Assembly (NCBI RefSeq): GCF_963921235.1
Contig: NC_086101.1
Location: 27,962,001 to 28,026,000 of the forward strand
Direction of reading: 5' to 3'
DNA: 64,000 nucleotides
From: Mobula hypostoma
Lineage: Eukaryota
Shown here piece after piece: positions 11,975 through 61,584 of this stretch; position 1 is the stretch's first letter; each line of letters starts with the position of its first letter. A program made the position numbers and the translations under genes. The notes below the pieces were generated by a model. It saw only the letters and a program-made list of their open reading frames with translations. It searched no databases and was not told the origin of the DNA.

Positions 11975-12004
11975 ACCAAAACCTTATATGGTTATATGCC
12001 GGTT

Positions 12005-12042: not shown

Positions 12043-12106
12043 ATGGAAGCGTCCTTGAGAGCGTTGTTGATAGTGTTCGTCTTCCAGCGTGGAGAGGCCT
12101 CCGCAT
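12043..12106 (+). CDS. Non-classical MHC class I gene A, exon 1 (signal peptide)
   Basis: MEASLRALLIVFVFQRGEASA, phase-1 donor T|GTGAGT; homologous to gene B leader (both end ASA); in frame with the alpha1 exon. Confidence 0.85.
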
Positions 12107-12747
12107 GTGAGTGATGGTGTGGGGAAGGGTCAGGGTCAGGGTCAGGGTCAGTGGGGGGGGGGGGGTCGAGCCTGGGGAAGGAGTTTCCTTTCACAGACAT
12201 CCCACCCTGCAAAAACTCATTTCAGGGAGGTAGCACTCCGCCGTCCGCAACCCCATATCTGCACCCCCCCCCCCCCCCCCCCGTCGACCTCGACCTTCAA
12301 GGATGTATGTAATACTTTGTTTAGTGATTTTGTCTAATCTGTAAACCAAATTGGGTATGTGTGACATTAAGATATGTACTTATATTATCATGTTTATTCT
12401 ATTACAACTTTAAGCTAGTCTACAGGGAGTTTGGCCTCATCACGTAGGACATCAATAGCGTAGCTCCGTGGCAGCTAGCCAGCTAGTTTAAATCAGGAGT
12501 CCCCAACCTTTTTTGCACCGCGCACCGGTTTAATATTGACAATATTCTTGCGGACCGGCCGACCCGGGGGTGGCGGGCGGGGCAGGTATTAAACGCGACC
12601 GGAATTTAGGTGATAAGTCAACTGTAAGTCACTTGTAAGTGGCTAATACACTCAATTTCGTTCCTAAAGGGGTTTAATCTAACGAATTTAATATTAAACA
12701 CACAGCACATATTTCCTCGCGTGAATGTATTGATAAGTCAATCATAA

Positions 12748-15700
12748 CAGTGGTCCCAAACCTCCGGGCCGTGAAGCATGTAGTGGTAGCCAGAACGCAC
12801 CCAGCACATCTTTAAGAAAAAAGCCGAAATAAACAAGCTAATTGATTAGGTGCCGCACTGCACGTAAATATCGGCCCAGATCAGAGACCGTGAAATCGGC
12901 AATCGCCTCTGATCTGGGCTGACATTTACATTCTGGGCGGCACCTAATTAATTAGCTTAATTAATCAAGATCCTACATCTACGGACTCCAGAGCCTGCCG
13001 GCCCCGACGCTAGCAGGCATGAACTTTCAATTGCGGCTCCTGCCATTGATCTCGGCGGCTCCAACACCTCAGGACATATTCAAAACCCGGACTCCAGCAA
13101 CGACCAGGGACACATTCGAAGTGATTGCGCAACCACCAACTGCGACTCCAGCCTTGATCTCCAGGCCGGGTCTTTATGTGCTGCTGTTGTGACTCCCGTC
13201 TCCCATTACCCCACCACCACTCCGCAGCCCCGTCTTCCTCAGATCCCACCGTCAGCTCCTGGGCCCTCAGAGGCTCCATCTTCCTCTCACCCCAACCCTC
13301 CCCTCTCCATTGACACACCCAGCCTCCCCCCCTCCCCCCTCTGATCCCAGCTCTCATCCGTGCCGGGTCTTTACCATCCCCTCCGACCTTCAACTGTCGG
13401 AGGCAGAACGCTCTGTTCTCAGTAAGGGCCTCACGTTTGTCCCCCTTCGCCCACACCTCAGCGAGTTCCGTGTTCGCCATGATGCGGAACTTTTCTTCCG
13501 CCGTCTCCGTCTCCGAGCCTACTTCTTCGGCAAGGACTCTTCCACCCCCACCGATGACCCCTTCTCCCGTTTTCATCCCTCCTCTTCTTCATGGACACCC
13601 CGCTCTGGTCTTCTGCCTGCTCTGGATCTCTTTATTGCCAACTGCCGACGGGACATCAACTGTCTCGACTTCACCGCACCTTGTCCCCATTCCAACCTCA
13701 CTCCTTCGGAACGCTCTGCTCTCCACTCCCTCCGCACTAATCCTAACCTTATTATTAAACCCGCTGATAAGGGGGGTGCTGTTGTAGTCTGGCATACTGA
13801 CCTCTACCTTGCCGAGGCACAGCGACAACTCGCGGATACCTCCTCTTATTTACCCCTCGATCGTGACCCCACTAAGGAGCACCAGGCCATTGTCTCCCAC
13901 ACTATCACCGACTTTATCCGCTCAGGGGATCTCCCATCCACTGCTACCAACCTTATAGTTCCCACACCCCGCACTTCCCGTTTCTACCTCCTACCCAAGA
14001 TCCACAAACCTGCCTGTCCTGGCCGACCTATTGTCTCAGCTTGCTCCTGCCCCACCGAACTCGTTTCTGCATACCTCGACACTGTTTTATCACCCCTTGT
14101 TCAATCCCTTCCGACCTATGTTCGTGATACTTCTCACGCTCTTAAACTTTTCGATGATTTTAAGTTCCCTGGCCCCCACCGCTTTATTTTCACCATGGAT
14201 GTCCAGTCCTTATATACTTCCATCCCCCATCAGGAAGGTCTCAAAGCTCTACGCTTCTTTTTGGATTCCAGACCTAATCAGTTCCCCTCTACCACCACTC
14301 TGCTCCGTCTAGCGGAATTAGTCCTTACTCTTAATAATTTCTCCTTTTGCTCCTCCCATTTCCTCCAAATTAAAGGTGTAGCTATGGGCACCCGTATGGG
14401 TCCTCGCTATGCCTGTCTTTTTGTTGGGTTTGTGGAACAATCTATGTTCCGTGCCTATTCTGGTATCTGTCCCCCACTTTTCCTTCGCTACATCGACGAC
14501 TGCATTGGCGCTGCTTCCTGCACGCATGCAGAACTCGTTGACTTTATTAACTTTGCCTCCAACTTTCACCCTGCCCTCAAGTTTACCTGGTCCATTTCCG
14601 ACACCTCCCTCCCCTTTCTAGATCTTTCTGTCTCTGTCTCTGGAGACAGCTTATCCACTGATGTCTACTATAAGCCTACTGACTCTCACAGCTATCTGGA
14701 CTATTCCTCTTCTCACCCTGTCTCTTGCAAAAACGCCATCCCCTTCTCGCAATTCCTCCGTCTCCGCCGCATTTGCTCTCAGGATGAGGCTTTTCATTCT
14801 AGGACCAGGGAGATGTCTTCATTTTTTAAAGAAAGGGGCTTCCCTTCCTCCACCATCAACTCTGCTCTTAAACGCATCTCCCCCATTTCACGTACATCTG
14901 CTCTCACTCCATCCTCCCACCACCCCACTAGGAATAGGGTTCCCCGGTCCTCACCTACCACCCCACCAGCCTCCGGGTCCAACATATTATTCTCCGTAAC
15001 TTCCGCCACCTCCAACGGGATCCCACCACTAAGCACATCTTTCCCTCCCCCCCTCTCTCTGCATTCTGCAGGGATCGCTCCCTACACAACTCCCTTGTCC
15101 ATTCGTCCCCCCCCATCCCTCCCCACTGATCTCCCTCCTGGCACTTATCCGTGTAAGCGGAACAAGTGCTACACATGCCCTTACACTTCCTCCCTTACCA
15201 CCATTCAGGGCCCCAAACAGTCCTTCCAGGTGAGGCATCACTTCACCTGTGAGTCGACTGGGGTGATATACTGTGTCCGGTGCTCCTGATGTGGCCTTTT
15301 ATATATTGGTGAGACCCGACGCAGACTGGGAGACCGCTTTGCTGAACATCTACGCTCTGTCCGCCAGAGAAAGCAGGATCTCCCAGTGGCCACACATTTT
15401 AATTCCACATCCCATTCCCATTCTGACATGTCTATCCACGGCCTCCTCTACTGTAAAGATGAAGCCACACTCAGGTTGGAGGAACAACACCTTATATTCC
15501 GTCTGGGTAGCCTCCAACCTGATGGCATGAACATCGACTTCTCTAACTTCCGCTAAGGCCCCACCTCCCCCTCGTATCCCATCTGTTACCCATTTTTATG
15601 CACATATTCTTTCTCTCACTCCTTATTCTCCCTCTGTCCCTCTGAATATACCTCTTGCCCATCCTCTGGGTCACCCCCCCCCTTGTCTTTCTTCCCGGAC

Positions 15701-16087
15701 CTCCTGTCCCATGATCCTCTCGTATCCCCTTTTGCCTATCACCTGTCCAGCTCTCGGCTCCATCCCTCCCACTCCTGTCTTCTCCTATCATTTTGCATCT
15801 CCCCCTCCCCCTCCAGCTTTCAAATCCCTTACTCACTCTTCCTTCAGTTAGTCCTGACGAAGGGTCTCGGCCTGAAACGTCGACTGCGCCTCTTCCTCTA
15901 GATGCTGCTTGGCCTGCTGCGTTCACCAGCAACTTTGATGTGTGTTGCTTGAATTTCCAGCATCTGCAGAATTCCTGTTGTTTGCATAATTAATTAGCTT
16001 GTTTACTTCGATTTTTTTCTTAAAGGTGTGCTGGGTGCGTTCCGGCCACCGCTGTATTCTTCATGGCCTGGAGGGTGGGGACCACTA
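12748..16087. mobile_element. Palindromic MITE-like element (about 300 bp when rejoined), interrupted by Penelope
   Basis: CAGTGGTCCC...GGGGACCACTA ends; arms are mutually reverse-complementary; same core at about 29742-30080. Confidence 0.65.
12959..15986 (+). mobile_element. Penelope-like retroelement, near full length (RT + GIY-YIG)
   Basis: ORF 13310-15289 with ADKGGAVV, GVAMGT, RYIDD; GIY-YIG (LYIGET...RLGDRFAEHL) continues after a TGA at 15287-15289; 14-bp flanking duplication TAATTAATTAGCTT (12945-12958, 15987-16000). Confidence 0.93.
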
Positions 16088-16949
16088 ATAAGTCACTTAT
16101 AAATCAATAGTATCATAACATTTTAAGTAACGTTTGGAGATTAAACACACCGCATATTTTCCTCATATGAACATATAAAATCATTCCCACACACCAATAT
16201 CGCTGAATCAGTGGGAGCCCTGAGCTTGTTTTCCTGCAACAAGATGATGCCATCGAGGGGTGAGGGGAGACAGTGATACTCGAAGGGCGTTCCTTATCTC
16301 CAGTCTATTCCGCAATTTAGTTTTCGTTGCATTCATTGCAGAAAACTCTGCTTCGCAGAAATATGTTGGAAATGGAAGCAACAATTTCAGTGCTTTCGTG
16401 GCTTTCTCAGGATATTCAGCCTTGGCTTTGATCCGGAATGCCGGCAGAGATGTTATGTCAAACATACTTTTCAGCCCACCGTCATTTGCAAGCTCGAGGA
16501 GTTGATCTTTTTCCCGCGCTGATGTGGATGATTCACTGGGGACATTCACAGACGGGTCACGGACCTATTTCTTTGCACGTCTTGGGTCACTGATGACCTC
16601 GCGTGCGTTAAAATTCAACAGTGCGTGACAGGGAATGAGGAAAGGTGCAGCTGACTCATATCGTTTCATATCACCAAATCATATCGTTTCCTCGCGGTCC
16701 AGTGGTTGGGGATCACTCTTAGCACAAAGAGAGACCAATCAGGATGCTCGCTCTCGCTCTCAAAAAAATCTATTTCTGGGATATTGTATATAATTTCCGG
16801 GTGTCAGGGAGCCACTATCGATATGCGCGAAACTCCTGGAACTTCTGGGAGAGGTGGGATGTCTGCTTTCAGACAAGTGTAAAGTGAGTGACGGGGCTGG
16901 GAGAGAGGCGAGATACAGCTGGAGACTGGAGCGGGAGAAAAGATGAGGC

Positions 16950-17241
16950 NNNNNNNNNNNNNNNNNNNNNNNNNNNNNNNNNNNNNNNNNNNNNNNNNNN
17001 NNNNNNNNNNNNNNNNNNNNNNNNNNNNNNNNNNNNNNNNNNNNNNNNNNNNNNNNNNNNNNNNNNNNNNNNNNNNNNNNNNNNNNNNNNNNNNNNNNNN
17101 NNNNNNNNNNNNNNNNNNNNNNNNNNNNNNNNNNNNNNNNNNNNNNNNNNNNNNNNNNNNNNNNNNNNNNNNNNNNNNNNNNNNNNNNNNNNNNNNNNNN
17201 NNNNNNNNNNNNNNNNNNNNNNNNNNNNNNNNNNNNNNNNN
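16950..17241. other. Assembly gap (run of N) within intron 1 of gene A
   Basis: 292 consecutive N. Confidence 0.99.
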
Positions 17242-18220: not shown

Positions 18221-18478
18221 CCTCTCATCTCCTCCAATTTTTTGTGACCTCCTCATTTGAGATTCCCGACTTCCCGCAGTTTCTGTCTGTCGGCTATGTG
18301 GACGGCGTCAAGTTCATGACCTACAACAGTGATCGGCCGTTGGTTCTCCAGGACCAGTGGATGAGTAAGAGTGAGGGGGTCAAGTGGTGGAGGAGGAAGC
18401 TGGAATTTGTCAAGAGTCGGCAGATTACACTGAAACAATTTGCTTCATTCATAATGTCTCAAACCAATCATTCACGTG
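18221..18478 (+). CDS. Gene A exon 2 (MHC class I alpha1 domain)
   Basis: TTTTTCAG acceptor, G|GTGAGT donor, 258 bp phase 1-1; SHLLQFFVT...FPQFLSVGYVDGVKFMTYNSD...QWM...QTNHSR. Confidence 0.92.
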
Positions 18479-23533: not shown

Positions 23534-24050
23534 TTATTAGGTACACACTGTATGCCTGCTCTTTAATGCAAGTACCTAATTAGTCAATCATGTGGCAGCA
23601 CCTCGATGCATAAAAGCATGCAGACATGGTCAACAGGTTCAGTTGTTTTTCAGACCAAACACCAGAATGGGGAAGAAATGTGATCTGAGCGACTTTGACC
23701 ATGAAAATGATTGTTGGTGCCAGATGGGGTGGTCTGACTATCTCAGAAACTGCTGATCTCCTGGGGTTTTCATGTGCAACAGTCTCCAGAAGTTACAGAG
23801 AATGGTGCGAAAAACAAAAAGCATCCAGTGAGCAGCTGTTCTGTGGGTGAAAATGCCGTGTTAATGAGAGAGGTCAGAGGAGAATGGCCGGACTGGTTCA
23901 AGTTGACAGGGAGGTAACAGTTGCTCAAATAATCAACGTTTCAACAGTGGTGCGCAAAAGAGCATCTCTGAACGCGCAGCACGTAGACCCTTGAAGCGGG
24001 TTGGCCTGTGGGGCGGCAGCAGAGCAACACACCAGGTTCCACTGAGTGTA
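23534..24050 (+). mobile_element. Tc1-like deletion derivative
   Basis: TTATTAGGTACAC start, transposase N-terminal remnant, CCACTGAGTGTA end; second copy at 52480-53004. Confidence 0.7.
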
Positions 24051-26002: not shown

Positions 26003-27909
26003 CCGTGCTGTAATTGTTATATGGTAATATAGGATTAGGAAGCTTTTAGAAACCTACAAGGAGCAATTAAAAGAGTCATTAGAAGGGAAAAGATGAAATA
26101 TGAAAGCAAGCTAGCAAATAATATCAAAGCGGATAATGAAAGCTTTTTCAAGAATGTAAAAAAATATAAGAGAGATGAGAGTAGCTATAGGGCTGGAAGA
26201 GAAATAACGGGGGACAAGCAGATAGCTGATGAACTAAATGAGTATTTTGTGTCAGTCTTCACTGTGGAAGACACTAGCAGTGTGCCAGATGTTGAAGGGT
26301 GTGAGGGAAGAGAAGTGAGTGCAGTTACTATTACAAGGTGCACAAAAAGCTGAAAGACCCAAGGCTACATAAGTTACCGGGACCAGATGAACTGCACCCT
26401 CGGGTTCTGAAAGAGGTAGCAGTTGAGATTGTGGAGGCGTTATTAATGATCTTCCAAATGTCATTGGACTCTGACATGACTTGAGGAAGCTGATGAAGGT
26501 GATTGATGAGAACAGTACAGTAATTGTCTACATAAACTTGCAGTAGCATTTGACAAGATCTCTCATTGGAGGCTGATCCAGAAAATTAAGATGCAGGGGA
26601 TCTAATTTGATCTGCCCCAATTTAATTCTTCTCAAGGTCCAGATTTATCCATAACTATCTTAAACTGTGAGGAACACACACAATATGCTGGAGGGACTCA
26701 GCAGGCTAGGCAGCATCTATGGGAAAAGAACAAGCAGTTGACGTTTTGGGCCAAGAGCCTTGGCCAGGACTGGTAAAGGAAGAGGTCAGACTGAGAAGGT
26801 GGGGGGAGGGAAGGAAGACGTACAAAGCGGAAGGTGAAAGATGAAACCTGGATAGGGGGAGGGGTGAAGTAAAGAGCTGGGAAGTTGATTAGGGAAAGAG
26901 ATAAAAGGCTGGAGAAGGGGGAATCTGATAGGAGAGGATAGAAGACCATGGAAGAAAAGGAAGAGGGAAGAGTACCAGCAGGAGGTGATGGACAGGTAAG
27001 GAGACTAGGTGAGAGAGGGTAACAGGAATGGGAAATGGTTTTACCTATCACCTCCACCTTGTACGTCTTCCTCCCCTCCCCCCACCTTCTTACTCTGACT
27101 TCTCTTTCTTTTCAGTCTTGATGAAGGGTCTCGGTCTGAAACGTCAACTATACTCTTTTCCATAGATTCTGCTTTAGTCTGCTGAGTTCCTCCAGTACTT
27201 TGGGTGTGTTGTTTTGGATTTCCAGCATTTACAGATTTTCTTGTGTTTGTAAAAACCTTAAGGAGTTGTGATCACACTTCCCAAAATACCCTCTGATTAA
27301 AAGACAGGATCGGTGCTTCAAATGTAGTAGTGTAGTGGGTGAGACTTTGGACCAGGGGTTCCCAACTCGGGGTCCACTGACCCCTTGCTCGATGGTATTG
27401 GTCCATGGTGTAAAAAAGATTGGTAGCCCCTGCAGTCACAGTTCTGCAGACACATTGCTTATAATTTGAAAGCTAAATTTTATTCATGAAAAGGTATTTA
27501 GGGAATGGTAGATAATAAAACTTTTCTCATGGCATAAGGCTGAGATTTAGGGGGACAGCTGAGAGGTTTAGAGTGGACCTGGGAAGGATTTTTTTCACCC
27601 AGAAGCGGCTTGGAAGCCAGAGCATACTGCCTGAGGGGGTGGTGGAGACAGTGACTGTCATAAATGCTAAAAAAAAGTCTGGACCAGCTCTAAAATCACT
27701 AAGACACTGAAGGTTACAGATCAAATGCTGATAAATCGGGTCTGTATTTATTAGATCAGCATGGAGATGGTGGGCCAAATGGGCTTTTCCTCTGCTCTGC
27801 AATTCCATACGGATAGTCTTGTTTTTTAGACGATGTGGCTGCTTCTCAAAACACACAGAACAAGTTCCAAATCATGGTAAACACCCATCGACTGTTTGTG
27901 TGCTGACAG

Positions 27910-28182
27910 GTTTCCATACCCTGCAGCAGATATTTGGCTGTGAACTGAAGGAGGACGGGACCTCAAGTGGCTTCTCCCATTACAGCTGGGACGGCGAGGA
28001 TGTGATGCGCTTTGACCAGGGCCACATGTTCTGGGTGACACCATCATCGTGGGCACAGAACATTAAAAACCAGTGCACTGGTGATGAGGTCCGTGTTAAG
28101 AGACTGAAGGACTTCCTGGAGAAGGAGTGTCTGCAGTGGCTGCAGAGATACACAGAATACGGAGAGAGGGAATCGCGAGTGG
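27910..28182 (+). CDS. Gene A exon 3 (MHC class I alpha2 domain)
   Basis: GACAG acceptor, G|GTGAGT donor, 273 bp; FHTLQQIFGCEL...YSWDGED...FLEKECLQWLQRY with the C101-C164 pair. Confidence 0.95.
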
Positions 28183-28780: not shown

Positions 28781-29044
28781 TGCCTCCCCAGATGACGATC
28801 ACGCCTTCGGCCAACAGCCTGCACCTCTCCTGCTTGGCCACCGGCTTCCACCCCCCATCTATCGAGGTGACCCTGTTGAGGAATGGGACCATCTTACCCG
28901 AGACCCAATCCAGTGGGCTCCTGCCCAATCACGACGGCACCCACCAGATCCAGAAGTGGGTGCTGGTGGACCCCGCGGACCCGGGCCCGTTCTCCTGTCG
29001 GGTGGAGCACAGCGGACTGGAGGACGCCGTCACCCGGATTTACA
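28781..29044 (+). CDS. Gene A exon 4 (alpha3, Ig C1 domain)
   Basis: CCCCAG acceptor, A|GTGAGT donor, 264 bp; LSCLATGFHP...LPNHDGTHQ...FSCRVEHSGL. Confidence 0.95.
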
Positions 29045-31022: not shown

Positions 31023-31118
31023 AGCGGGAAGCTCAATCCCGGATCCTATTAATAGTCGGGCTCCTGGCCATCCTTGTGGTTCTCGCCATCACCATTGGTG
31101 CTGTGTACAGGTGGCGAG
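31023..31118 (+). CDS. Gene A exon 5 (transmembrane)
   Basis: CTCCCCAG acceptor, G|GTAGGG donor, 96 bp; KREAQSRILLIVGLLAILVVLAITIGAVYRWR. Confidence 0.92.
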
Positions 31119-31149
31119 GTAGGGCTGGGGAGAACTGAGCATGGGGGGG

Positions 31150-31670: not shown

Positions 31671-31703
31671 TGGGAGTGAAGAGGAAGTACAATGCCACAC
31701 GGA
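31671..31703 (+). CDS. Gene A exon 6 (cytoplasmic, Tyr-containing)
   Basis: TTGTTTTCGCAG acceptor, A|GTAAGT donor, 33 bp; VGVKRKYNATR. Confidence 0.85.
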
Positions 31704-32398
31704 GTAAGTTCAATATCAGTGCTCCTCTCCTCCCCCTTGATTATGTGACGATAAACTCCTTGTGGGTCTGTGTGTCTGTCTCTCCCTCTCTCAGTGGAGC
31801 CATGAGACAAGTTCCGGAGTTGCGGGGGGGGGGGGTCACACAACTCGGGGAAGATCAAAGGGCTTCAGAACAGTTCACCTCAGGGGTTCCAGAATGGGGA
31901 ACGTTGCTGCTGGGGATGGAATGGAGAAGCCAGGTTGTTGTTTAGGGAACAGAGGGAGAAGGGTGAGACATGGATTAAAAGTGATGAACTGTGTGGGGCA
32001 TGTGGGGAGGGACAGTTCCCACTGCGGGAGTGGTCAGGAACCAGGGGTCAGAGAATGTTTCTGATCAGCCAAAGAATCAAGTGTGGTCTGGGGAAATATG
32101 TACACAAGTAAGTTGTTAGGCTGGGGAATACAGCCCCTAGGGGATGGGGAGCACAGCACCCCCCCCCCCGGAGGGGACGGGGAGCTGAGCGCCCCTGGGG
32201 ACACACAAGGGACACACAGAAAGGAATTATTCAGGGGAATGGTTTCCACCCATCGGGCACCTACTGTGGTTCTCTCTCTATTTCCAAGCCCCTCTCCCTG
32301 ATTCTTTCCCAGTCCATGGTCAGTGACTCCCTCCCTCTCCTACCCCCTCTCCGTCCCTGACAGTGAACGGATTCTAACTCTTGCCCTTCCATTCGCAG

Positions 32399-32446
32399 CC
32401 ACAGATGATGCAGGATTTGCGGCAAGTTCCCTCAGCAGTACTTCAG
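32399..32446 (+). CDS. Gene A exon 7 (cytoplasmic, Ser-rich)
   Basis: CTTCCATTCGCAG acceptor, G|GTAGGA donor, 48 bp; TTDDAGFAASSLSSTS. Confidence 0.8.
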
Positions 32447-33350
32447 GTAGGAATGGTGTTGATTGACACTCGGCTCCCAACCGGCTCATTACAGATGCTC
32501 CTTACTGTATCAGCTCTGTGTGCCCCTCCTTTGCCTCCGTAGTGTGGTGAGGGGTAGAAAATTGGAATGTGGGGCCAATGGGTTAGTGAGACAATGAGAT
32601 TACTCCATCAGCTGGTAAGCACTAAATGAGCCAAATAGTCTCCATCAGTAGTGTAAGGAAATATTGATCTATATGAAATATCTTCAAATCCCTTAATTCC
32701 TCTAATATCCAACGATCTGTTGAACCCAGTCATGGATACACACCCAATCCTATCGGGAGGAAAATTCCGCTGGCTCAGGATGGTGACATCTTGTTCTCAT
32801 CTCCTAGGTCTCAACTGGTGTAGACCCTAACAGCAAGGAAGCATGTCCTTTGGCTCATTGCATCTGCACCAACCAACAAACACGCACACGTACATTCTAA
32901 GCATTCACAGTCGAAGCATTAAATATGCAGAGTAACAGAGTACAGAAGCAGCCAGTCTCGTCAATGCCAACCATGGTGTCCATTTGACCAACATCTCATG
33001 TATTGGACCAAATGTTATCGTATCCTCTGGCAGCTCGTACCAAATTCCCATCACCCTCTGTGTCCTGAAGTTGCTCTTTCCTCTCTCACCTTTAAACTCT
33101 GCCCTCTGGTTTTTGATTCCCTTTCCCTGGGTCTGATGGGCTTCACTGGGATTGGGGCTGGGGGGTGGGGGGGAGGAGACGTTGCTGATGGGGTTTTCCG
33201 GGGAGTGCCAGTGATGGAAGCCGAGAGATGGTGGGGGGGAGAGGGAGTGTCTGAGGGAGGGGTGGGGAATGGGGTGGTGCACAGGAAGTCCAGTTGACTC
33301 TGGGCCCAATGGTTTGCTTAACTCTGATGTGACTGATCTCTCTTCTGCAG

Positions 33351-33442
33351 TGATCTCACTGGCAGTCAGTGAGGACGAGAAGTTGTCCGAGGAGAGGACT
33401 GAGAGACTATGGGGACATTTCCTATGGGGGGGATCTTATTGA
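33351..33442 (+). CDS. Gene A terminal exon; stop codon supplied by the inserted CR1
   Basis: CTCTTCTGCAG acceptor; VISLAVSEDEKLSEERTERLWGHFLWGGSY*; homologous to gene B 61507-61584. Confidence 0.72.
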
Positions 33443-33822
33443 AACGTATAAAATCCTAAAGGGATTGGACAGGCTAGATGCAGGAAGATTGTTCCCCATG
33501 TTGGGGAAGTCCAGAATGAGGGGTCACAGTTTGAGGATAAAGGGGAAACCTTTTAGGACTGAGATTAGGAAAAACTTCTTCACACAGAGAGTGGTGAATC
33601 TGTGGAATTCCCTGCCACAGGAAACAGTTGAGGCCAGTTCATTGGCTATATTTAAGAGGGAGTTAGATATGGCCCTTGCGGCTAAAGGAATCGGGGGTAT
33701 GGAGGGAAGGCTGGTACAGGGTTCTGAGTTGGATGATCAGCCATGATCATACTGAATGGCGGTGCAGGCTCGAAGGGCCAAATGGCCTACTCCTGCACCT
33801 ATTTTCTATGTTTCTATGTTTC
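33422..33822 (+). mobile_element. 5'-truncated CR1 3' end inserted in gene A's last coding exon
   Basis: GDLIETYKILKGLDRLD...GHSLRI...NLWNSLP; (TTTCTATG)n tail; TTTC on both sides. Confidence 0.9.
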
Positions 33823-34559
33823 AGCTCATCGCTTCAAGTCAACACTGCTTGATTCTGGATTGGGTCTCTGTGGATCTGTGCTGGTACCATCAGCTCCCAC
33901 ACACTGCAGTTACTGTACATAACATGCCAGATGCATGTCGCTTATTCACAAATCACACGACCAGTCCAAACCTGTATATCCTCCCTTCATGCTGTGCAGA
34001 ACCAGATGGGATTTGTCCACCTTCAACACCCTCTCTCTCCGTCTCCAACCTCTCCCTCCGTCTCCAACCTCTCCCTTCCACATTGCCACAGCTTTTGTTT
34101 TCAAATCCTTCCCAATTCTAATAGGAGAGTCATTAGTTTAAAATGTTAATCAATTCCTCCCCCTAATGCCTGCCTCTGCACTTTCGACTGGAACCTTATC
34201 TTGCCATTTGTAAACTCTCTGAGCCAGATAATATGTATAACCCAAATGCGTTTTGGTATGTCTTGTATTCCTGTAGTTGTGTTGGTCCACTGAACTGTCT
34301 ACAATTTAAAACCAATACACCTTTCAAGATAGGACCCTCAAGGGCTAGGGTGGGCTGTGGACAGTGATAATTGTAACTGTAAATAGTGGTATTTATGAAA
34401 TATTGAGATGTGTATAATAAGAGTATTGTTGCGATATTGTATCCATTTGTATAAACGTAGCTATACAATTTTAAAAACAGCTGGTGTAGGTTTGATGGGC
34501 TGAATGGCCTTTTCTGTGTCAAAAGGAACCATGGGAAACAGCAATCACAGGTGTCCTGT

Positions 34560-36480: not shown

Positions 36481-36624
36481 ACCCAGCCTCTAGTGAAAGC
36501 ACATGCCCTCTAATCCAGGCAGCATCCAGGTAAACATCTTCTGCACCCTCTCCAAAGCCTCAACATCCTTCCTGTAGTGGGGCAATCAGAACTGTATGCA
36601 ATATATTCTATGTTTTATCACTGC

Positions 36625-39600: not shown

Positions 39601-40600
39601 CTGTTTACGAATCTTAGTAATTTGACGTTTAGCCGAATCAAATTTCAATTGTTTAGCCAGTAATTTACCCGATTTATCACTATGAATATAAAAATCACTT
39701 CTAGTTCTCATTAATTGATTTTCAATCGAGGATGTTAATAATAAGCAACATACATCAAAGTTGCTGGTGAACGCAGCAGGCCAGGCAGCATCTATAGGAA
39801 GAGGCGCAGTCGACGTTTCAGGCCGAGACCCTTCGTCAGGACTAACTGAAGGAAGAGTGAGAAAGGGATTTGAAAGTGGGAGGGGGAGAGGGAGATGCAA
39901 AATGATAGGAGAAGACAGGAGGCGGAGGGATAGAGCCGAGAGCTGGACAGGTGATTGGCAAAAGGGATATGAGAGGATCATGGGACAGGAGGTCACCCCC
40001 CACCTTGTCTTTCTCCCCGGACCTCCTGTCCCATGATCCTCTCGTATCCCCTTTTGCCTATCACCTGTCCAGCTCTTGGCTCTATCCCTCCCCCTCCTGT
40101 CTTCTCCTATCATTTTGCATCTCCCCCTCCCCCTCCAACTTTCAAATCCCTTACTCACTCTTCCTTCAGTTAGTCCTGACGAAGGGTCTCCGCCTGAAAG
40201 GTCGACTGCACCTCTTCCTACAGATGCTGCCTGGCCTGCTGCGTTCACCAGCAACTTTGATGTGTGTTGCTTGAATTTCCAGCATCTGCAGAATTCCTGT
40301 TGTTTATGTTAATAATAAGCTATGTTCTAATTGGAGTTCAACTCCGTGTTTGTACAGCTCCTTACTGGGAGAAATAGCATATTTTTTATCGACTTCATTA
40401 ATTTTATCAACCAACAGAAGTATTTCATTGTTAATACGTCTTTTCAAACCAGCCGAATAGGAAATAATTTGACCACGGATATAAGCTTTAAAGGCGTCCC
40501 AAACAGTTCCGTTGGAAACTTCTTCCGTAGTATTAGTTGAAAAGAAGAAATCAATCTGCTCCTTTACAAATTTGACAAAGTCCTGATCACTGCTAATGGC
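36625..40600 (-). mobile_element. L1 LINE, 5'-truncated ORF2 (frameshifted), interrupted by Penelope; ends approximate
   Basis: ORFs 37002-38393, 38434-38922 (GTRQGCPLSP, LYADD) and 40304-40600; SLTHMFWSC; A-rich 3' end on the minus strand. Confidence 0.9.
39747..40305. mobile_element. Penelope-like inverted terminal pair inside L1 ORF2
   Basis: Inverted structure; 15-bp duplication ATGTTAATAATAAGC (39732-39746, 40306-40320). Confidence 0.88.
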
Positions 40601-41272
40601 TCCATAATCTCTTCCGTTTCCTTTTTCAGAATTTAACACGAGAAAATCTGCAGATAGTATGCTGCTTTTTCATAACGGAATTGCTTTTTAGATGCATCCC
40701 GTGCATTGTTAAAAGCTTCCGAATACTCTAGCTTTCCATTATTTTTTGCTATATTTTATGCCCTCTCTTTTGGTTTTGTGCTGTCTTTGTCTTCCCCTTG
40801 CCAGTCGCGGGTAAGTCACCCGCCCTTTAAAATACTACTTCTTTGGGATGAACTGACGCGGTATCTTCCGAGTTACTCCCGGAATCTCCAGCCATTGCTG
40901 CTCTACCGTCATCCCTGCTAGTGTCCGCTTCCAAACAACTTTGGCCAGCTCTTTTCTCACGTCTTTCTCATATCTTTACTCGGTTGCGATACCGATGCAT
41001 CCAATTTTAGCTTCGTGCCCGTGATATACAGGGCTGCGTATTCTTTTCGGCTGCTTTGCTCCCGCGCGTTCGCAGTTCCAGACCGTGATGCAGCCAGTCG
41101 GTACACTTTCAACAGGTAATGTATGTGGAAGTTTATTCGGTGACAAGCCGAACAGGTCATCGCTGCGAGTAAGTTTTACATTGCGCTTGTGCATAAATAC
41201 GCGTGAATATTTGGCAAGAAATACATCGGGTGTTCGAGCCTCTGACTGGGAAACTTCTTCAGCGCTCTTTTA

Positions 41273-41315
41273 CCCGGAGACTGGTGACACGCCACTTGGC
41301 GACGTTTCTGATTGG
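41273..41315 (+). promoter_or_regulatory. MHC-type X1-X2-Y promoter module of gene B
   Basis: CCCGGAGACTGGTGACACGCC identical to gene A; CTGATTGG starts 35 bp after X1; ISRE position degenerate (AGTTACACTTG, 41330-41340). Confidence 0.75.
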
Positions 41316-41358
41316 ATACAAACCTCAGTAGTTACACTTGACCATCTGGGTCCCAGAT

Positions 41359-41431
41359 ATGGAGCGGACGAGTTCTCGCAGAGTGGTGGGGCTGATAGTG
41401 TTGGCCTTCCTGTGCGACGCCGCCTCCGCAG
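41359..41431 (+). CDS. Non-classical MHC class I gene B, exon 1 (signal peptide)
   Basis: MERTSSRRVVGLIVLAFLCDAASA, phase-1 donor G|GTGGGT; in frame with the alpha1 exon. Confidence 0.87.
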
Positions 41432-44475: not shown

Positions 44476-44730
44476 AATCTCACTCTCTCCGAATTCTCCT
44501 GACGTCCACGACTGAGATTCTGGATTTTCCACAGTTAGTGGCTGTCACTAATGTGGATAGTGTCCAGTTTGTGGTTTACGACAGTAAGCGGAAGTTGGTT
44601 CCCCAGGAGCAGTGGATGGTGAAGAGCGAGGGGGCCGAATGGCATAAGAAGTTGTCACTTGCTGAGGAGTGGGAGAGGACCCAGAAAAAACTTATTCTCT
44701 TCATAATGTCTTTGACCAATCAGTTGGGTG
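44476..44730 (+). CDS. Gene B exon 2 (alpha1 domain)
   Basis: TTTGTTTCAG acceptor, G|GTGAGT donor, 255 bp; ESHSLRILLT...FPQLVAVTNVDSVQFVVYDS...QWM...LTNQLG. Confidence 0.92.
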
Positions 44731-47775: not shown

Positions 47776-47862
47776 TGGTGGGATAGTTTATGTAGGTTTA
47801 CAAAATACTTGACATAAAAGTGCACAGAATAACAACAAAATAACATACATATTTAAGTCACA

Positions 47863-50220: not shown

Positions 50221-50939
50221 CACCATAAGCGGGAGGAGAAGATGGCAGCACAACGCAGCGCGCACAGCTCTCCGGTGAAATGATATCGTATCTGTTAAAT
50301 AGGGGACGTGGACAATTCTGATTTGATGGAGACAGACGTGAGAGCACAGAGGAACATCTGGAGAAATTTCTGAAATGCCCGGTTCACTGCCGCTGCTACT
50401 GTGTGATCGAGAATCTCTGGAGGGAAGGCCCCAAAATCCCCGGCTTTGTCTGCTGCTGGCGACCGAGACTGAGGTCGAAGCGTTCGCATAGAGATGGTGC
50501 TCGGTACTCGGTGGCGGAGGGCTGATCGGAGGCTCGAGGTTTTCGGACGACTCAGAGTCGGACTGTGGTCGGGCATGGCAGTGAGGGTTTTCTTCCTTCT
50601 ACCGTCTGCGTGAGGTGTGGGACATTCGAGAAACTTTGAACTTTTTTAGATACCTGGAGCATCTGTGGCAGAGGTGACCTGCTCTTTATCTGGACGGGAA
50701 CTGATATCCTGGCTGGGAAGTTTGGTCATGTTACTCTGGAAGATTTAAACTGTTTTTCTTGGGGTGGGGAGGGGAAAACAAGAGCAACAAGTCAGAAGAT
50801 GGAGGGATTGACTGGAAGGTAGATGAGCAGTAATTCAGGAGCAAGGTAATGGTCACGATGGAATGAATGGGTGGAAATGTGTTTACTTTAGCGCCAGGGA
50901 TATTAGTGGTAAGGTTACGGAGCATGCATCTGTACGTGA

Positions 50940-52479: not shown

Positions 52480-53004
52480 CAGTTGCCACTTTATTAGGTA
52501 CACTTAATGATGCAAATATCTAATCAGCCAATCATGTGGTAGCAACTCAATGCATAAAAGCATGCAGACATGGTCAAAAGGTTCAGTTGTTGCTCAGATC
52601 AAACATCAGATTTGGGAAGAAATGTGATCTAAATGACTTTGACCGTGGAATGATTGTTGGTGTCAGACTGGATGGTTTGAGTATCTCAGAAAGCGATCTC
52701 CTGGGATTTTCACTCACAACGTTCTCTAGAGTTTACAGAGGATGGCGTGAAAAACAGAAAACATCCAGTGGGAGGCATTCTGTGACTGAAATTGCCTTGT
52801 TAATGAGGGAAGTCAGAGGAGATTGTCAAGACAGGTTCAAGCAGAAAAGGAAGGATACAGTAACCCTAACCATGTGTTACCATAGTGGCTTACAGAAGGG
52901 CATCTCTGAACACACATCACCTCAAACCCTAAAATGGTTAGGATACAGCAGCAGCACCCCTGTCTGAGGTACAAGACATATCTCATGAAGTGGCCACTGA
53001 GTGT
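52480..53004 (+). mobile_element. Tc1-like deletion derivative
   Basis: GKKCDLNDFDRGMIVG...FSRVY; CCACTTTATTAGGTACAC and GAAGTGGCCACTGAGTGTA ends. Confidence 0.75.
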
Positions 53005-54612
53005 ACAGGAATAAAACTCAAAATAAGAAAGGTGCAAGCAACCTAATGGGACAACAAACAATAGACCCTTCAATAGCCATTGAGAAACAGGCATGCAGGC
53101 AGATTCAGGGAAGACGGGAAAACAAAAGGTTTTGTTGTTGGGAGTTACTTCAGTTTCCTCAATATAGACGGGGACCTCCTTAGTGCATGGGGTTTATTTG
53201 TTAGGGACAACCGGGGATGGGTCCTTAAGTAAGTGTAAATAGTCCAACTAAAGGAGGGGATATATGGCATCCGAGGCTGCAAAGTCAGCCTGGTCAGGTG
53301 ACTGACCTTTCTGTGGGAAAACGTTTAAGCAATGGAGATCACTGTTCCTTAAGTTTTAAGAGAGCTATAGATAAGGAGAAGTGTAGACCCTGCAGGAGGG
53401 TATGAAATTGGGGCAGTGCAAATTACGGGAGATTCAGTTGCAGTCACTCTGTTGTGGTAAGGATATGGAGACTTTGCAGCCGGCGCAGAAGATGTTTGCC
53501 ACAATGCCGCCTGGATTAGAGGCCACATGCTGTAAGGAAAGGTGAGACAAACTTGGGTTGTTTTCTCTGGACAGTGGAGGCAGAGGGAAGCCCTGATTTA
53601 CCGTATGTTTACAAGAGGTATAAATGGAGAGACAGATAGCATCTTGCTCCCAGGGTCGAAAAGCATGCATTCCAGGTGGGAGGGGTAAGTTGAAAGGAGA
53701 TGTGCATGGTGAGTGGTGGGTGTCTGAAAACCACTGCCTGCAGTGGTGACCAAGGCAGAAATACTGGAGCTGCTGAAGAGACTCTTCGTAGGTACATGAT
53801 TGTGCTGGGAATTGGAGGATTCGGTTGTTGTGAAGGCAGAGGGCATTAATTTAGTTTAGGCATGCAATTAATAGATTAGTTAGCTGTCCACAACATTAAT
53901 TCTCTGGGTGAGCACTTGAATTGTAAGGCAGAAGGCAGTTATGGACCAAGTACTGGGAACACACCAGTCCTCACCGAAAGGCTTACGTGAAGGGTCATTG
54001 AAGCAACATCTCAGAGGGTCTATCCTGAAGCCAGCACTTAGATGCAACCGTCAATGAGAGCATGCCAACGTCCCTCCTTTCTTAAAAGTTTAGGTGATTC
54101 TGCACTTCACCAAAGACTCTGACAAACCTCTGCCGATGTACGGTGGAAAGCATCACTGCCTGGTATGAAAGAACTCCAGTACACAGGAACACAAGAGGAT
54201 GCAGAGAGAGGTAAACTCAGCCAGTTCTATCACAGGTACAGCCCTTCACACCATCAAGGACATCTACAAGAGGACTGTATTTCTTTTCTCCATCAGCTTG
54301 TACTAGTGTCCTTATGTTTAGTGGTGCATAATTTATGTTAATTCAAGTACATGTTAAACTATCTCCATTGTGTTTTTCATGTGCTGTGCTCCTGCTGCAC
54401 AAAGTATTGATACCCTGGGTAAAATGAACTTAAGCGGGATGAGTCATCAGCATAGATGTGATGGGCCGAAAGGCCTTTTTCTAGCTGTGTGAGTCCATAC
54501 AGATGGTCTCATTTATTTAAGGGTCCTTTGACTGGACACGTGTGCTTCTCTGAACACGGAACAAGGACCATGAGTTTCGTTAAACATTCGCCGACTTCTT
54601 ATGTTTTGACAG

Positions 54613-54885
54613 AAATCCACACACTCCAGCAGGTGATTGGCTGTGACCTGAGGGAGGATGGGACCACGAAAGGCTTCACTCAGTACAGCTGGGATGGAGA
54701 GGACCTGCTGAGCCTGGACAAGGACCACACAGAGTGGGACACATTTGTAATGTGGGCAGAGAGAATTAAACACCAGTGGGATCAGGACATGGTCAACATT
54801 GGGAAATGGAAGTACTTCCTGAAGGTGGACTGTGTCCGGTGGCTGAGGAAGTTCCTGGCTTACGGAAGGAGGCAACTGCGAGTGG
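54613..54885 (+). CDS. Gene B exon 3 (alpha2 domain)
   Basis: TTTTGACAG acceptor, G|GTGAGT donor, 273 bp; IHTLQQVIGCDL...YSWDGED...FLKVDCVRWLRKF. Confidence 0.95.
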
Positions 54886-55283
54886 GTGAGTGGTCGGGGG
54901 AGGTTGCGATTCCGGGATATTGGGGTAGGGAACTGAACATCACTGATGAGGATGGTGGGTTGTAGTGAATGGGGGGGGTGAAGGGGTGACGGGGGGCAGT
55001 TAGGAAGAAAGTGTGGGGGAGGCGGGAGTGAGAGGTATGTGAGGGTGTGGGGTTCTGGGAGCAGAGATGAGAAATTGTCTCCAGTTGTGTGCATGCGTAT
55101 GCGTGTGTGCGCGTTAGAGTATCATAAAGAGATAGGATTGGGTGGTCTCTATCGATCTGTGTGTGTGTGATGGACTCCACCATGTTCCCCCTCTTTGGGG
55201 TCTCTTGCTCTCTTTCTGTCTCTCTGGTTGGGGGTGTCTCTATCCCTATAGACTCCACACTGACTCACCTTCCTTCCCCCCAG

Positions 55284-55547
55284 AACCTCCCCAGGTGACC
55301 TTCACCCTGTCAGCCAAAACCAGCACCCTCTCCTGCTTGGCCACTGGCTTCCGCCCCTCATCCATTGAGGTGACCCTGTGGAAGAATGGGACCATCCTCC
55401 CTGAGGCACACTCCACTGGGCTCCTGCCCAATCACAATGGCACATACCAGATCCGGAAGTGGGTGCAGATTGATCCCGCGGACCCGGCATCATTCTCCTG
55501 CCGGGTGGGGCACAGCGGACTGAAGGATCCCATCATCTGGAATGACG
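55284..55547 (+). CDS. Gene B exon 4 (alpha3, Ig C1 domain)
   Basis: CCCCCCAG acceptor, G|GTGAGC donor, 264 bp; LSCLATGFRP...LPNHNGTYQ...FSCRVGHSGL. Confidence 0.95.
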
Positions 55548-55689
55548 GTGAGCTGGTCGGTTGCCATGGGGGAGGGTCCAAGAGCACACGTGTGCGCTCA
55601 CGGGTGGGGCAGTCTGTGGTGGGGGCGAGGTGTCTGAGGGTCCCAGAGTTGTGCTGGGGGAGATCCTCAGATACTCAGGTAGAGTCACA

Positions 55690-60290: not shown

Positions 60291-60420
60291 GGTCAAGTCC
60301 CTGGTATCCAGGAACAGGATAGAGCAGGGCTTGGTTTATCCTGCGACAGGGCAGAGCTGTATCTGGGGACAGTACGGAGCAGTGGCAGTTGTATCCGAGG
60401 TGATTACTGCACAGGGTAGA

Positions 60421-60790: not shown

Positions 60791-60838
60791 TGATTGTGGG
60801 GCCTGTGTCTCAGACACCCTCTCTGATTCTTTCTCCAG

Positions 60839-60985
60839 TGCAGGGAACTCAACCCTGGATACAGCCTAACCTGCTGAGTAGCTCCAGCATTTTCAGTGGG
60901 TTGTGCTGGATTCCACTCTTCTTCGGGATCAGGGCCATTTCCGTCATCATTATCCTCATTATCGGTGCCAGCTGCAGAAGGCGAG
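60839..60985 (+). CDS. Gene B exon 5 (connecting peptide + transmembrane) with a 51-bp in-frame insertion
   Basis: CTTTCTCCAG acceptor, G|GTATGG donor, 147 bp = 96 + 51; aligns without gaps to gene A's TM exon outside 60865-60915. Confidence 0.85.
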
Positions 60986-61080
60986 GTATGGCTGGGAAGG
61001 GAACTGGGCAGAGGGAGCAGGGAGGGTGTGGGGAAGGGATAGCTGAGGGTCTGTGGGGGTAGGGGAAGGTTCTGATGCAG

Positions 61081-61112
61081 GAGAGTATCAGCGGCAGCAC
61101 GCTGGTGTACTG
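61081..61112 (+). CDS. Gene B putative exon 6 (cytoplasmic mini-exon, phase 1 to 0)
   Basis: GEYQRQHAGVL, strong donor CTG|GTAAGT, codon-wise similar to gene A exon 6; weak purine-rich acceptor. Confidence 0.5.
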
Positions 61113-61506
61113 GTAAGTGTAATGCTGTTCAGGGCCAGCTACACAGGTTCAGTTACGTGGCTGTCTGTGCGGAGTTCGTCCGTTCTCCCTGTGACCGTGT
61201 GGGTTTCCTTGGGATGTTACAGTTTCTTCCTGCATTACAGAAGTGTACAGATTGGAATTAGTAGGTTGGGGACATGGTATGTGAGTGCTGAAAGCACATC
61301 AACACCTGCAGGCTGCCCCAGTACATATTTGTACTGTGTCTGTCATGGATGTACTTCGCTGTCTGCTTCGAAGGTTACCAGGGAGTGCCGGTATGGGAGG
61401 AGGGGGACGATGGGGCAGGTCGAGTGGAAGGGGACGGGTCTGAGGGAGGTGGGATGGAAAGGTGCAGTTGACCCTGGATCTGATGTGACCAATTTTGCTT
61501 CCCCAG

Positions 61507-61584
61507 ACTAGTGGTTCCATTAGGATAAGGACCAAGAGACTCCAGGGCTGTACCAGCTCATCATTCCAAGCCAACGCTCCTTGA
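61507..61584 (+). CDS. Gene B terminal exon
   Basis: TTTTGCTTCCCCAG acceptor; TSGSIRIRTKRLQGCTSSSFQANAP* in phase 0 (D* if entered in phase 1); homologous to gene A's interrupted last exon. Confidence 0.62.
   Translation, partial: TSGSIRIRTKRLQGCTSSSFQANAP

Follow-up and report, generated by a model that had tools for sequence, protein, structure and literature searches.

Organization of the locus

The window, a stretch of 64,000 nucleotides of Mobula hypostoma DNA (contig NC_086101.1, positions 27,962,001 to 28,026,000), contains two complete MHC class I genes, which lie in tandem on the plus strand and are free of stop codons. Both gene A and gene B have the full class I build of leader, alpha1, alpha2, Ig-like alpha3 and membrane anchor, and Pfam recognizes each of the four alpha1/alpha2 exons as MHC_I and the two alpha3 exons as C1-set. 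The introns are rich in transposons, all splice borders follow AG/GT, and phase 1 is kept by every internal intron as far as the transmembrane exon. Judged by these borders, the phase and RNA, the in-frame exon sets lie where a first-pass annotation of the letters had placed them, apart from the 3' ends.

Gene A begins with a leader exon at 12043–12106 (21 codons plus one base, from ATG to a phase 1 GT donor), the N-terminus of which is the same as in the NCBI models P0329 and P0333. It is followed by alpha1 at 18221–18478 (MHC_I, E = 1e-9), alpha2 at 27910–28182 (MHC_I, E = 1e-18; covered by RNA contigs with 0 mismatches), alpha3 at 28781–29044 (Ig C1-set), and an exon for the connecting peptide and the transmembrane helix, visible as a hydrophobic stretch, at 31023–31118. 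The cytoplasmic tail is encoded by a 33-nt exon at 31671–31703, a Ser-rich exon at 32399–32446, and the coding part of exon 8 at 34736–34755, which holds the last six codons and the TGA at 34753–34755 and continues into the 3' UTR. Five exon joints of gene A are found in RNA contigs with 0 mismatches, and splicing is as predicted. The joints 28182/28781, 29044/31023, 31118/31671 and 31703/32399 appear in two runs, those flanking the 33-nt exon in four, and the loose contig ends at 27909 and past 32447 correspond to the 3' end of the alpha1 exon and to 34737 in exon 8, respectively. A short last exon right after 31703 is wrong, and the RNA moves the 3' end to two extra exons, which gives a protein of 351 aa; P0333, the orthologue in M. 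birostris, is equally long. The usual N86 glycan site is retained in gene A, as is a cytoplasmic tail of the usual kind, and position 147 is a free Cys.

The first intron of gene A contains an assembly gap (N) at 16950–17241, 4.8 kb past the leader and 1 kb ahead of alpha1; it touches no exon, and the letters of the window alone cannot show continuity across it. Several observations support this continuity: an RNA contig extends 352 nt upstream of alpha2, which equals alpha1 (258), the leader (64) and 30 further nucleotides; in the NCBI models of two Mobula species, alpha1 is spliced to this same leader; and gene B has the same leader/alpha1 layout without a gap.

Gene B consists of a leader exon at 41359–41431 (identical to residues 401–424 of P0329), alpha1 at 44476–44730 (MHC_I; contiguous with alpha2 in P0329, P0299 and P0275), alpha2 at 54613–54885 (MHC_I, E = 4e-20), alpha3 at 55284–55547 (C1-set, E = 2e-14), and a fifth exon at 60839–60985 that encodes a long connecting peptide and a transmembrane stretch with an internal Arg. 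This exon is 51 nt longer than its counterpart in gene A, and the 17 extra residues recur in P0275, the stingray orthologue, and in the transcript P0277. In the automatic NCBI model the last coding piece lies at 61507–61511, where it completes an Asp before a TAG and yields a tail ending in …RRRD, rather than at 61584 as annotated at first; P0329 ends in …CRRRD and matches gene B at 100% over 337 aa. The M. birostris orthologue spans 20.4 kb, which would place the end near 61.77 kb in the window. The N86 glycan site is lost in gene B, and in Mobula the cytoplasmic exons are lost as well, leaving four cytoplasmic residues. The splicing check by RNA that had been called for confirms five joints of gene A, and covers gene B at the level of the alpha2 and alpha3 exons only, where RNA runs contain 0.45 of the words of 54560–55600, about the exon share. 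Both genes are intact and transcribed.

In M. hypostoma, NCBI merges the two genes into a single 738-aa model; the first 347 residues of P0329 are identical to gene A, and gene B is contained in it at 100%. In M. birostris they are annotated apart, with 94% and 95% identity and amino-acid differences of 4.5–6%, and isoforms devoid of the transmembrane segment are predicted for both. The gene A orthologue is labelled 'zinc-alpha-2-glycoprotein-like', an automatic name only.

Both genes carry an MHC-type promoter module, which consists of an X-box-like element with TGACACGC followed by an inverted CCAAT (Y box). It lies on the plus strand at 11935–11975, 68 bp before the ATG of gene A, and at 41276–41316, 43 bp before that of gene B. 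The window contains the 41-nt pattern exactly two times, ahead of gene A and ahead of gene B, where shuffled sequences give an expectation of 0, and the two blocks are 82% identical.

Anchor residues and the groove

Alignment to the nurse-shark structure 6LUP confirms that both genes are strongly non-classical, since seven of the eight classical peptide-terminus anchors are replaced in each. Gene A has F7, W59, Q84, I143, Q146, C147, F159 and Y171, of which Y171 is classical, and gene B has I7, L84, I143, Q146, W147, F159 and F171, of which W147 is classical. The residues listed in the first-pass annotation and its count of one anchor kept per gene hold, except for the 'W59' of gene B: because this gene has a one-residue deletion at position 59/60, and W60 is conserved everywhere, its lone W is most simply read as W60. 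The W139 noted as shared by the two genes is indeed present, but it is also found in classical shark genes and is nothing special to this pair. W167 is retained in both. The replacements are mostly Phe, Ile, Leu, Trp, Gln or Cys, and with seven of eight hydrogen-bonding anchors gone, neither groove should be able to clamp both peptide ends in the classical manner. They may still bind peptides, because Tyr-to-Phe changes keep the shape of the pocket.

Aliphatic or aromatic residues abound in the groove lining and charged ones are few, in line with the hydrophobic grooves reported initially. Over 34 pocket positions, the hydrophobic fraction, a sequence proxy over related sequences rather than a measured pocket, rises from 0.43–0.47 in classical genes of sharks and rays to 0.57 in the UBA genes of sharks and 0.68 in those of rays; gene A has 0.62 and gene B 0.70, from which we infer that both linings are probably more hydrophobic than that of every classical relative. 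In gene B the groove is 94% identical to the stingray orthologues, while the remaining alpha1-alpha2 is 80% identical, a pattern opposite to that of classical class I.

As noted previously, the beta2m-contact residues Q96, D119, G120 and D122 and the C101-C164 pair are kept in both genes, and both disulphides are retained. Because these contacts are conserved, each chain is predicted to pair with beta2-microglobulin and to reach the cell surface. AlphaFold models (pLDDT 90) have the class I fold with confidently modelled helices of normal length, and their top solved match is 6LUP. The two genes are 47% identical in alpha1, 47% in alpha2 and 66% in alpha3, which agrees with the original remark that alpha1 has diverged while alpha3 stays similar.

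Lineage and closest relatives

In our careful tree, genes A and B fall in a ray-only clade of seven sequences (100/100), which lies inside a clade of 31 sequences (99/98) that includes the UBA references of Heterodontus francisci (O19480) and Ginglymostoma cirratum (O19479) (Bartl et al. 1997). A tree of alpha1-alpha2 alone places the ray clade in UBA in the same way. Within the UBA clade the rays join carpet-shark sequences and are not sister to all sharks, which may be a long-branch effect. The trees contained no labelled UCA, UDA, UEA, UFA or UGA sequences, and these lineages are excluded because of the strong grouping with UBA and the map position. Regarding the latter, a C4-like gene (MG1-4, ANATO and TED domains) lies on the opposite strand 3–9 kb downstream of the orthologues in M. 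birostris, Hemitrygon and Pristis; in M. hypostoma this neighbour would fall outside the window, so the synteny is known from the orthologous loci only. The UBA cluster has been mapped with c4 on one side and rxrb on the other (Verissimo et al. 2023, PMC10751288), and Supplemental File 3 of that work shows a sawfish gene labelled 'MHC-Ib' beside 'C4'. By sequence, the two genes thus belong to the already described UBA lineage. The first-pass annotation had left open a new lineage and had stated that nesting inside a described one would remove the novelty; since the genes nest in UBA and their orthologues lie beside C4, most of that novelty is removed.

Shark UBA shares with the ray genes the nesting in alpha1-alpha2, linkage to the MHC, adjacency to C4, tandem copies and the same exon build, and its references are 45–54% identical to them. 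Those references, however, keep five of the eight anchors (Y7, R84, W147, Y159 and Y171). Gene B goes beyond shark UBA in its 17 extra residues, membrane Arg and lost N86 site, and Mobula has only two copies here, whereas Mustelus has at least a dozen. Among named sequences, gene A is closest to LOC127586083/XP_051899850 (61%) and LOC127585956 (59%) of the sawfish Pristis pectinata, both entered as 'MHC-Ib' (PMC10751288 Supplemental File 3). They share its position relative to C4 and its kind of tail, and XP_051899850 also has its F7, W59, Q84, I143, Q146, C147 and F159. Sequence divergence is about 40%. The gene adjacent to C4 is of the A type in sawfish, but of the B type in Mobula and Hemitrygon.

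The best solved relative is classical shark UAA (6LUP; E = 1.5e-65 for the gene B orthologue, 38–43% identity), which resembles both genes in fold, disulphides, beta2m contacts and promoter type. UAA, however, has all eight end-anchors and a groove that varies between alleles. MR1 comes just behind 6LUP in sequence and fold searches, at about 33% identity, which is the usual level for non-mammalian class I; classical class I of birds or fish is also among the best solved relatives. At the aligned pocket position there is no sign of the ligand-binding lysine of MR1 (Val at position 45), and a review reports no MR1 in cartilaginous fish (PMC12562908). Several relatives of the two genes are named 'MR1-like' by NCBI. 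The likeness to CD1 suggested at first has nothing specific behind it, as CD1 is absent from the top 50–60 sequence and predicted-fold matches. CD1, UFA and UGA are non-classical, beta2m-type molecules with hydrophobic grooves, and the resemblance is a functional analogy only; the CD1-like UFA and UGA are other genes elsewhere in the shark and ray MHC (2025 review PMC12562908), and map alongside UDA and UEA to the other class Ib cluster (PMC12562908; PMC10751288).

Origin, ligand and function

Two rival accounts concern the origin and integrity of the genes. A ray-specific lineage that arose from the rays' own classical-like genes and became UBA-like by convergence would fit the weak grouping of alpha3 alone with those genes (66), the long stem of the ray clade (0.41), and a loss of anchors beyond that of any shark UBA; when alpha3 is added to the AU test, a single ray origin is only nearly rejected (p = 0.059). 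We consider this highly improbable, since the AU test on alpha1-alpha2 rejects one shared origin with the classical-like genes of rays (delta lnL 70.7, p = 0.007), the clade with the UBA references is strongly supported, the position beside C4 is that of the published cluster, rays and shark UBA have in common Ile143 and the loss of Lys146 and Tyr59, and a signal such as that of alpha3 is to be expected from exchange between linked genes. That one or both genes are expressed pseudogenes drifting without function has only the slightest chance of being correct. The terminal branch of gene A (0.46, compared to 0.20 in its sawfish relative), the differences between the two Mobula species, the lost cytoplasmic exons of gene B and the transposon-filled introns point in that direction. 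Against them stand full open frames in two Mobula species, intact gene B orthologues in three further rays, precise splicing of gene A, the nearly invariant groove of gene B among rays, and the kept cysteines and beta2m contacts. The dN/dS comparison proposed earlier gives a crude pN/pS of about 0.4 rather than 1 for gene A between the Mobula species, which is based on 14 differences and is not significant.

The nature of the ligand is less firmly indicated, and a non-peptide ligand is a tentative reading of the sequence that we hold at somewhat under even chances. Some class Ib molecules bind no more than a handful of conserved peptides, of self or leader type, and the N86 glycan serves chaperone-assisted class I loading. 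Presentation of peptides in an unconventional way, with termini unclamped or bulging or with a repertoire of this restricted kind, agrees with the nearest sequence and fold relatives being peptide binders (6LUP, chicken BF2 and fish class I), the many Tyr-to-Phe replacements, the retained Y171 (A), W147 (B) and W167 (both), and the N86 site of gene A. It seems rather doubtful in view of the lost end-anchors, which include K146, T143 and residue 84 at the C-terminal end, the missing N86 sequon of gene B and the poorly charged groove rich in aliphatic and aromatic residues. Mammalian class I-like proteins such as MIC, ZAG, HFE and FcRn serve NK-type or other receptors as surface ligands without carrying a ligand themselves, or have non-immune jobs, and a comparable role is conceivable here given the vanished anchor set, the four-residue tail and membrane Arg of Mobula gene B, the predicted M. 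birostris isoforms without a transmembrane segment, and the automatic NCBI name of the gene A orthologue. Such a role is unlikely, as the gene B pocket is conserved above the rest of its domain, a hint that it binds something, the helices are predicted to be of normal length and are modelled with confidence, and the MHC-type promoter module is retained.

To conclude, genes A and B are very probably both UBA-lineage class Ib genes of the lesser devil ray Mobula hypostoma, arranged in tandem just upstream of complement C4. They are unusual members of the known shark and ray UBA family, and not a novel type of MHC molecule. We propose that each may present either a conserved ligand that is largely hydrophobic or a peptide held in an unusual way, and that the complex would be recognized by an innate-like T-cell or NK-type receptor.

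Gene structure and transcription

Two sets of class I exons lie in the window, both on the plus strand, as found by motif scans and a six-frame comparison of the window halves, and tblastn with genes A and B and three relatives as queries returned no further class I exons in the 64 kb. Both genes have the class I build, namely an alpha1-alpha2 platform and an Ig C1-set alpha3 domain, each on its own exon, followed by a transmembrane (TM) exon. Pfam assigns the alpha1 and alpha2 exons of both genes to MHC_I and their alpha3 exons to C1-set. All splice borders are AG/GT and the internal introns are of phase 1 up to the transmembrane exon, in keeping with the first-pass annotation, which had described two complete exon sets, in frame and free of stops, with TE-rich introns.

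The window is ordinary vertebrate DNA with a single N run (16950-17241), which falls inside intron 1 of gene A, between the leader exon (12043-12106, plus strand, 64 nt) and the alpha1 exon (18221-18478, plus strand, 258 nt), and leaves the exons untouched. Continuity across this gap cannot be read from the window sequence, but it is supported by three observations: an RNA contig carrying gene A extends 352 nt before alpha2, equal to alpha1 (258), the leader (64) and a further 30 nt; the leader is joined to alpha1 in the NCBI models of two Mobula species; and the same layout is found, uninterrupted, in gene B.

The exons of gene A are present in RNA-type runs of one organism with 0 mismatches and no intron sequence, and in runs of a second organism with about 2-4% differences, which match the M. 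birostris protein. Four exon joints (28182|28781, 29044|31023, 31118|31671 and 31703|32399, all GT..AG) were read in RNA contigs, so that splicing, which had been proposed as a check on the gene models, is confirmed for gene A. Of the loose ends in this RNA, the one at 27909 consists of the final 30 bases of the alpha1 exon and the one behind 32447 maps to 34737. From the joints and the latter end, gene A has eight coding exons and 351 codons, with the stop at 34753-34755, and the joints rule out a short closing exon at 31795-31805. A crude pN/pS of about 0.4 between M. hypostoma and M. birostris argues against decay of gene A, but comes from 14 changes.

RNA runs of the same organism contain 0.43-0.45 of the words sampled from 54560-55600 in gene B, a stretch in which exons account for 0.47-0.52. 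The gene had been annotated as ending at 61584; in the NCBI model, which is fused with gene A, the transmembrane exon is spliced to 61507, adds an Asp and stops at TAG 61509-61511. The additional exons suggested at 61081-61112 and 61507-61584 have an open frame, yet they are unused by the NCBI models, and a remnant of a cytoplasmic exon was not found 3' of the transmembrane exon.

The fused model is P0329 (XP_062905765.1, M. hypostoma, 738 aa, 'uncharacterized protein LOC134347296'). It is identical to the first 347 of the 351 residues of gene A, to the end of exon 7, and matches gene B with 100% identity over 337 residues, ending in …CRRRD, and these identities place the window in M. hypostoma. 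Its residues 348-400, about 53 residues from otherwise non-coding sequence, bridge exon 7 of gene A to the ATG of gene B (window about 32446-41358), and the junction reflects either genuine transcriptional read-through or an error of annotation. In M. birostris the genes are annotated separately, gene A as P0333 (351 aa, 94% identical, named 'zinc-alpha-2-glycoprotein-like') and gene B as P0299 (341 aa, 95% identical). Three further M. birostris models, P0328, P0330 and P0331, are predicted isoforms of both genes that lack the transmembrane exon, from which secreted forms would result. Taken at face value, the fused protein and the zinc-alpha-2-glycoprotein label would mislead gene counts.

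Assignment to the UBA lineage

An exhaustive search with alpha2 of gene A as the sole query yielded representatives of at most 48% identity together with many fused multi-gene models, and the true relatives of both genes were recovered only by a second search seeded with shark and ray matches. These are two sawfish genes for gene A (61% and 59% identity), and a red stingray gene (78%) and a ray transcript from a public run (80%) for gene B. Both genes are 45-54% identical to a shark multicopy family, including Heterodontus O19480 and Ginglymostoma O19479, and 38-43% identical to the classical genes of Triakis. The two named shark sequences were published in 1997, in a paper to which a 2025 review refers for the UBA family (PMC12562908).

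Genes A and B are UBA genes, on the agreement of the tree, the shared substitutions and the position against C4. In a maximum-likelihood tree of 85 sequences over alpha1-alpha3, both genes and five ray sequences form a single clade (100/100) within a 31-sequence clade that holds both UBA references (99/98), with the classical clade apart, and the same UBA grouping is recovered from alpha1-alpha2 with support of 92-97. Phylogeny, which the first pass had called for as a check, nests the pair with the shark UBA references. An AU test on alpha1-alpha2 rejects the union of the clade with the classical-like genes of rays (delta lnL 70.7, p = 0.007), and the test is borderline when alpha3 is included (p = 0.059). 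In the alpha3-only tree there is a weak grouping with the ray classical-like genes, and gene A is joined to the B branch. This pattern looks like exchange between linked genes, which would also explain why alpha3, as had been remarked earlier, stayed similar between the two copies. With the shark UBA sequences the ray genes share I143 and the absence of K146 and of Y59.

The map position was read in the orthologous loci of M. birostris, Hemitrygon and Pristis, as C4 lies beyond the end of the window. The M. birostris orthologue of gene A (351 aa) is directly upstream of that of gene B, and 7.7 kb downstream of the latter, on the opposite strand, is a 1685-aa protein with MG1-4, ANATO, A2M and TED domains. 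The same C4-like neighbour lies 3.3 kb downstream of the stingray orthologue and 8.6 kb downstream of the sawfish relative. This sawfish relative, LOC127586083, is listed as 'MHC-Ib' next to a neighbour listed as 'C4' (Supplemental File 3, PMC10751288). The same paper places the multicopy UBA cluster between c4 and rxrb, and UDA, UEA and CD1-like UFA in a different class Ib cluster (PMC10751288). The tandem multicopy layout of UBA is also seen here, with two copies in the window and at least three models in the sawfish cluster. The trees covered UBA and classical references, and the genes would be set apart from UCA, UDA, UEA, UFA and UGA indirectly, by map cluster and by their strong grouping with UBA; a literature search found no primary paper on UFA or UGA.

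The class I gene that adjoins C4 is of the A type in the sawfish (Pristis pectinata CM019888.1:12348574-12378791) and of the B type in the other two genera, Mobula and Hemitrygon. The sawfish matches, among which an upstream 1296-aa merged model was left whole, contained no sequence of the B type.

Anchor residues, groove and fold

The residues that clamp peptide termini were read from an alignment to 6LUP, the solved classical class I molecule of the nurse shark, and to other shark and ray genes. Gene A has F7, W59, Q84, I143, Q146, C147, F159 and Y171, and gene B has I7, a deletion at 59, L84, I143, Q146, W147, F159 and F171. Accordingly, only Y171 of the classical (UAA) set of eight is kept in gene A and only W147 in gene B, a loss of seven of eight compared to three of eight in the shark UBA references. 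The first-pass list had counted one of eight in each gene and holds for all residues except W59 of gene B, which is lost to a one-residue deletion at 59/60; the single Trp nearby is most simply the universal W60. F7, W59, Q84 and C147 of gene A are common to the sawfish gene.

Other hallmarks of class I are retained in both genes, including the disulphides C101-C164 and C203-C259 and the beta2-microglobulin-contact residues Q96, D119, G120 and D122. The retention of the beta2-microglobulin contacts and of C101-C164 had been noted before and is upheld by the alignment to 6LUP; the contact residues suggest that both chains would pair with beta2-microglobulin. The N86 sequon is kept in gene A (N-H-S) and is absent in gene B and its orthologues (N-Q-L).

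The hydrophobic fraction of the groove was scored at 34 positions of the HLA-A2 pockets, mapped through 6LUP. It is 0.43-0.47 in classical shark and ray genes, 0.57 in shark UBA and 0.68 in the ray clade, with 0.62 in gene A and 0.70 in gene B, in line with the hydrophobic grooves described in the first pass; as the rows are related sequences, p-values overstate this contrast. Between gene B and its stingray orthologues the pocket positions are 94% identical and the rest of the domain 80%, whereas classical pairs show the reverse (62-65% in the groove, 78-86% in the rest). Gene B therefore lacks, in this comparison between species, the classical hallmark of a groove more variable than the rest, and the B-type sequences of devil ray and stingray have 31 of 33 pocket positions in common. 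In gene A, pocket positions show no such excess of conservation over the remainder of the domain.

AlphaFold models of both ectodomains have the class I fold (pLDDT 90), with the shark classical molecule as the best fold match, followed by MR1 and classical molecules of birds and fish. CD1 is absent among the 60 best PDB sequence matches and the 50 best fold matches, and a likeness to CD1 is rejected since peptide-binding class I molecules are closer in both sequence and fold.

The membrane exon of gene B

The transmembrane exon of gene B contains 51 nt that are absent from gene A (60865-60915) and encode 17 residues. The red stingray orthologue and a ray transcript carry these residues too, which makes the segment old and rules out a recent insertion as its source. 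Over its first 26 nt the segment is similar (88%, E = 0.008) to the terminus of a repeat copy on the opposite strand (26685-26710), and it could be an old exonised repeat end. The membrane stretch itself (60930-60985) has an Arg in mid-span (…FFGIRAISVII…), which is found in the stingray orthologue and not in the other ray transcript. The Mobula chain stops four residues past the membrane, and that of the stingray continues into a complete Ser-rich tail. In combining a membrane charge with a very short tail, gene B of Mobula is reminiscent of receptors that signal through adaptor chains.

Promoters and repeats

An identical promoter core precedes both genes (11935-11975 and 41276-41316), 43-68 bp before each ATG, and consists of GGAGACTGGTGACACGCC, 11 nt and TTTCTGATTGGA. 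It contains an inverted CCAAT box and a CRE-like TGACACGC in the layout of MHC X-Y modules. Between core and ATG, an ISRE-like stretch, AGTTTCGCTTCT, is present in gene A but not in gene B.

The introns reach 9.9 kb and hold reverse-transcriptase ORFs, a Tc1-type remnant and several repeat families. Collinear Tc1/mariner-type transposase remnants, 78% identical, lie in intron 2 of both genes (about 23560-23990 and 52500-52930), and the insertion therefore either predates the A/B duplication or was copied along with it; the 78% DNA match between 23566-23991 and 52510-52930 belongs to this transposase remnant and not to alpha1. The last coding exon of gene A with the start of its 3' UTR (34722-35340) has two copies of 70-74% identity on the same strand, at 50289-50572 in intron 2 of gene B and at 5110-5619 upstream of gene A. 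This region, in three copies of about 0.3-0.6 kb, probably represents an interspersed repeat or else the remains of earlier gene copies, and the last six codons of gene A may derive from it. The copy at 50289-50572 might have marked gene B as a chimera; this was rejected, as it is one of three repeat copies and carries no extra class I exons. At about 300-5100, near-identical blocks (ORFs 384-942 and 4502-5060) surround an 828-codon ORF on the minus strand that encodes a SCAN domain and a zinc knuckle; the whole looks like an LTR retroelement with a gag-like gene.

Interpretation

Genes A and B are MHC-linked class I genes, both intact and transcribed, and each has a promoter module of the MHC type. 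Judging from their sequence, the chains would pair with beta2-microglobulin and be displayed on the cell surface, with a groove predicted to be unable to clamp peptide ends. The ligand would be either a conserved hydrophobic one or an oddly held peptide, and innate-like T cells or NK-type receptors may recognise it. A more specific reading can be put together, although we regard it as rather unlikely as a whole. The ray-specific B branch would present a fixed ligand, or itself serve as a receptor ligand, and have a cell biology of its own; it has persisted at least since devil rays and stingrays split, and its marks are a near-invariant oily groove, the lack of the N86 glycan, the 17-residue insert and the membrane-span Arg. 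The A branch would hold its ligand covalently through the conserved free Cys147 in the F-pocket region; and UBA would have given rise to non-peptide presenters independently of CD1, UFA and UGA.

The UBA lineage, its map position in a ray and the automatic gene models were already known. The additions are modest, namely the extent of anchor loss in rays, the split into A and B branches with distinct tails, membrane parts and glycan sites, the groove frozen in B, and the annotation error that fuses the two genes.

The MHC goes back to cartilaginous fish, the oldest animals that have one, and how early class I genes branched into non-peptide or innate-type presenters is a question now being answered for the CD1-like lineages UFA and UGA. 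UBA is thought of as a recent offshoot of the classical genes, and the ray members of this younger lineage are much further from peptide clamping than their shark relatives. After the loss of the anchors, one ray branch froze its groove, and this combination makes genes A and B reasonable candidates for ligand elution and structure work.
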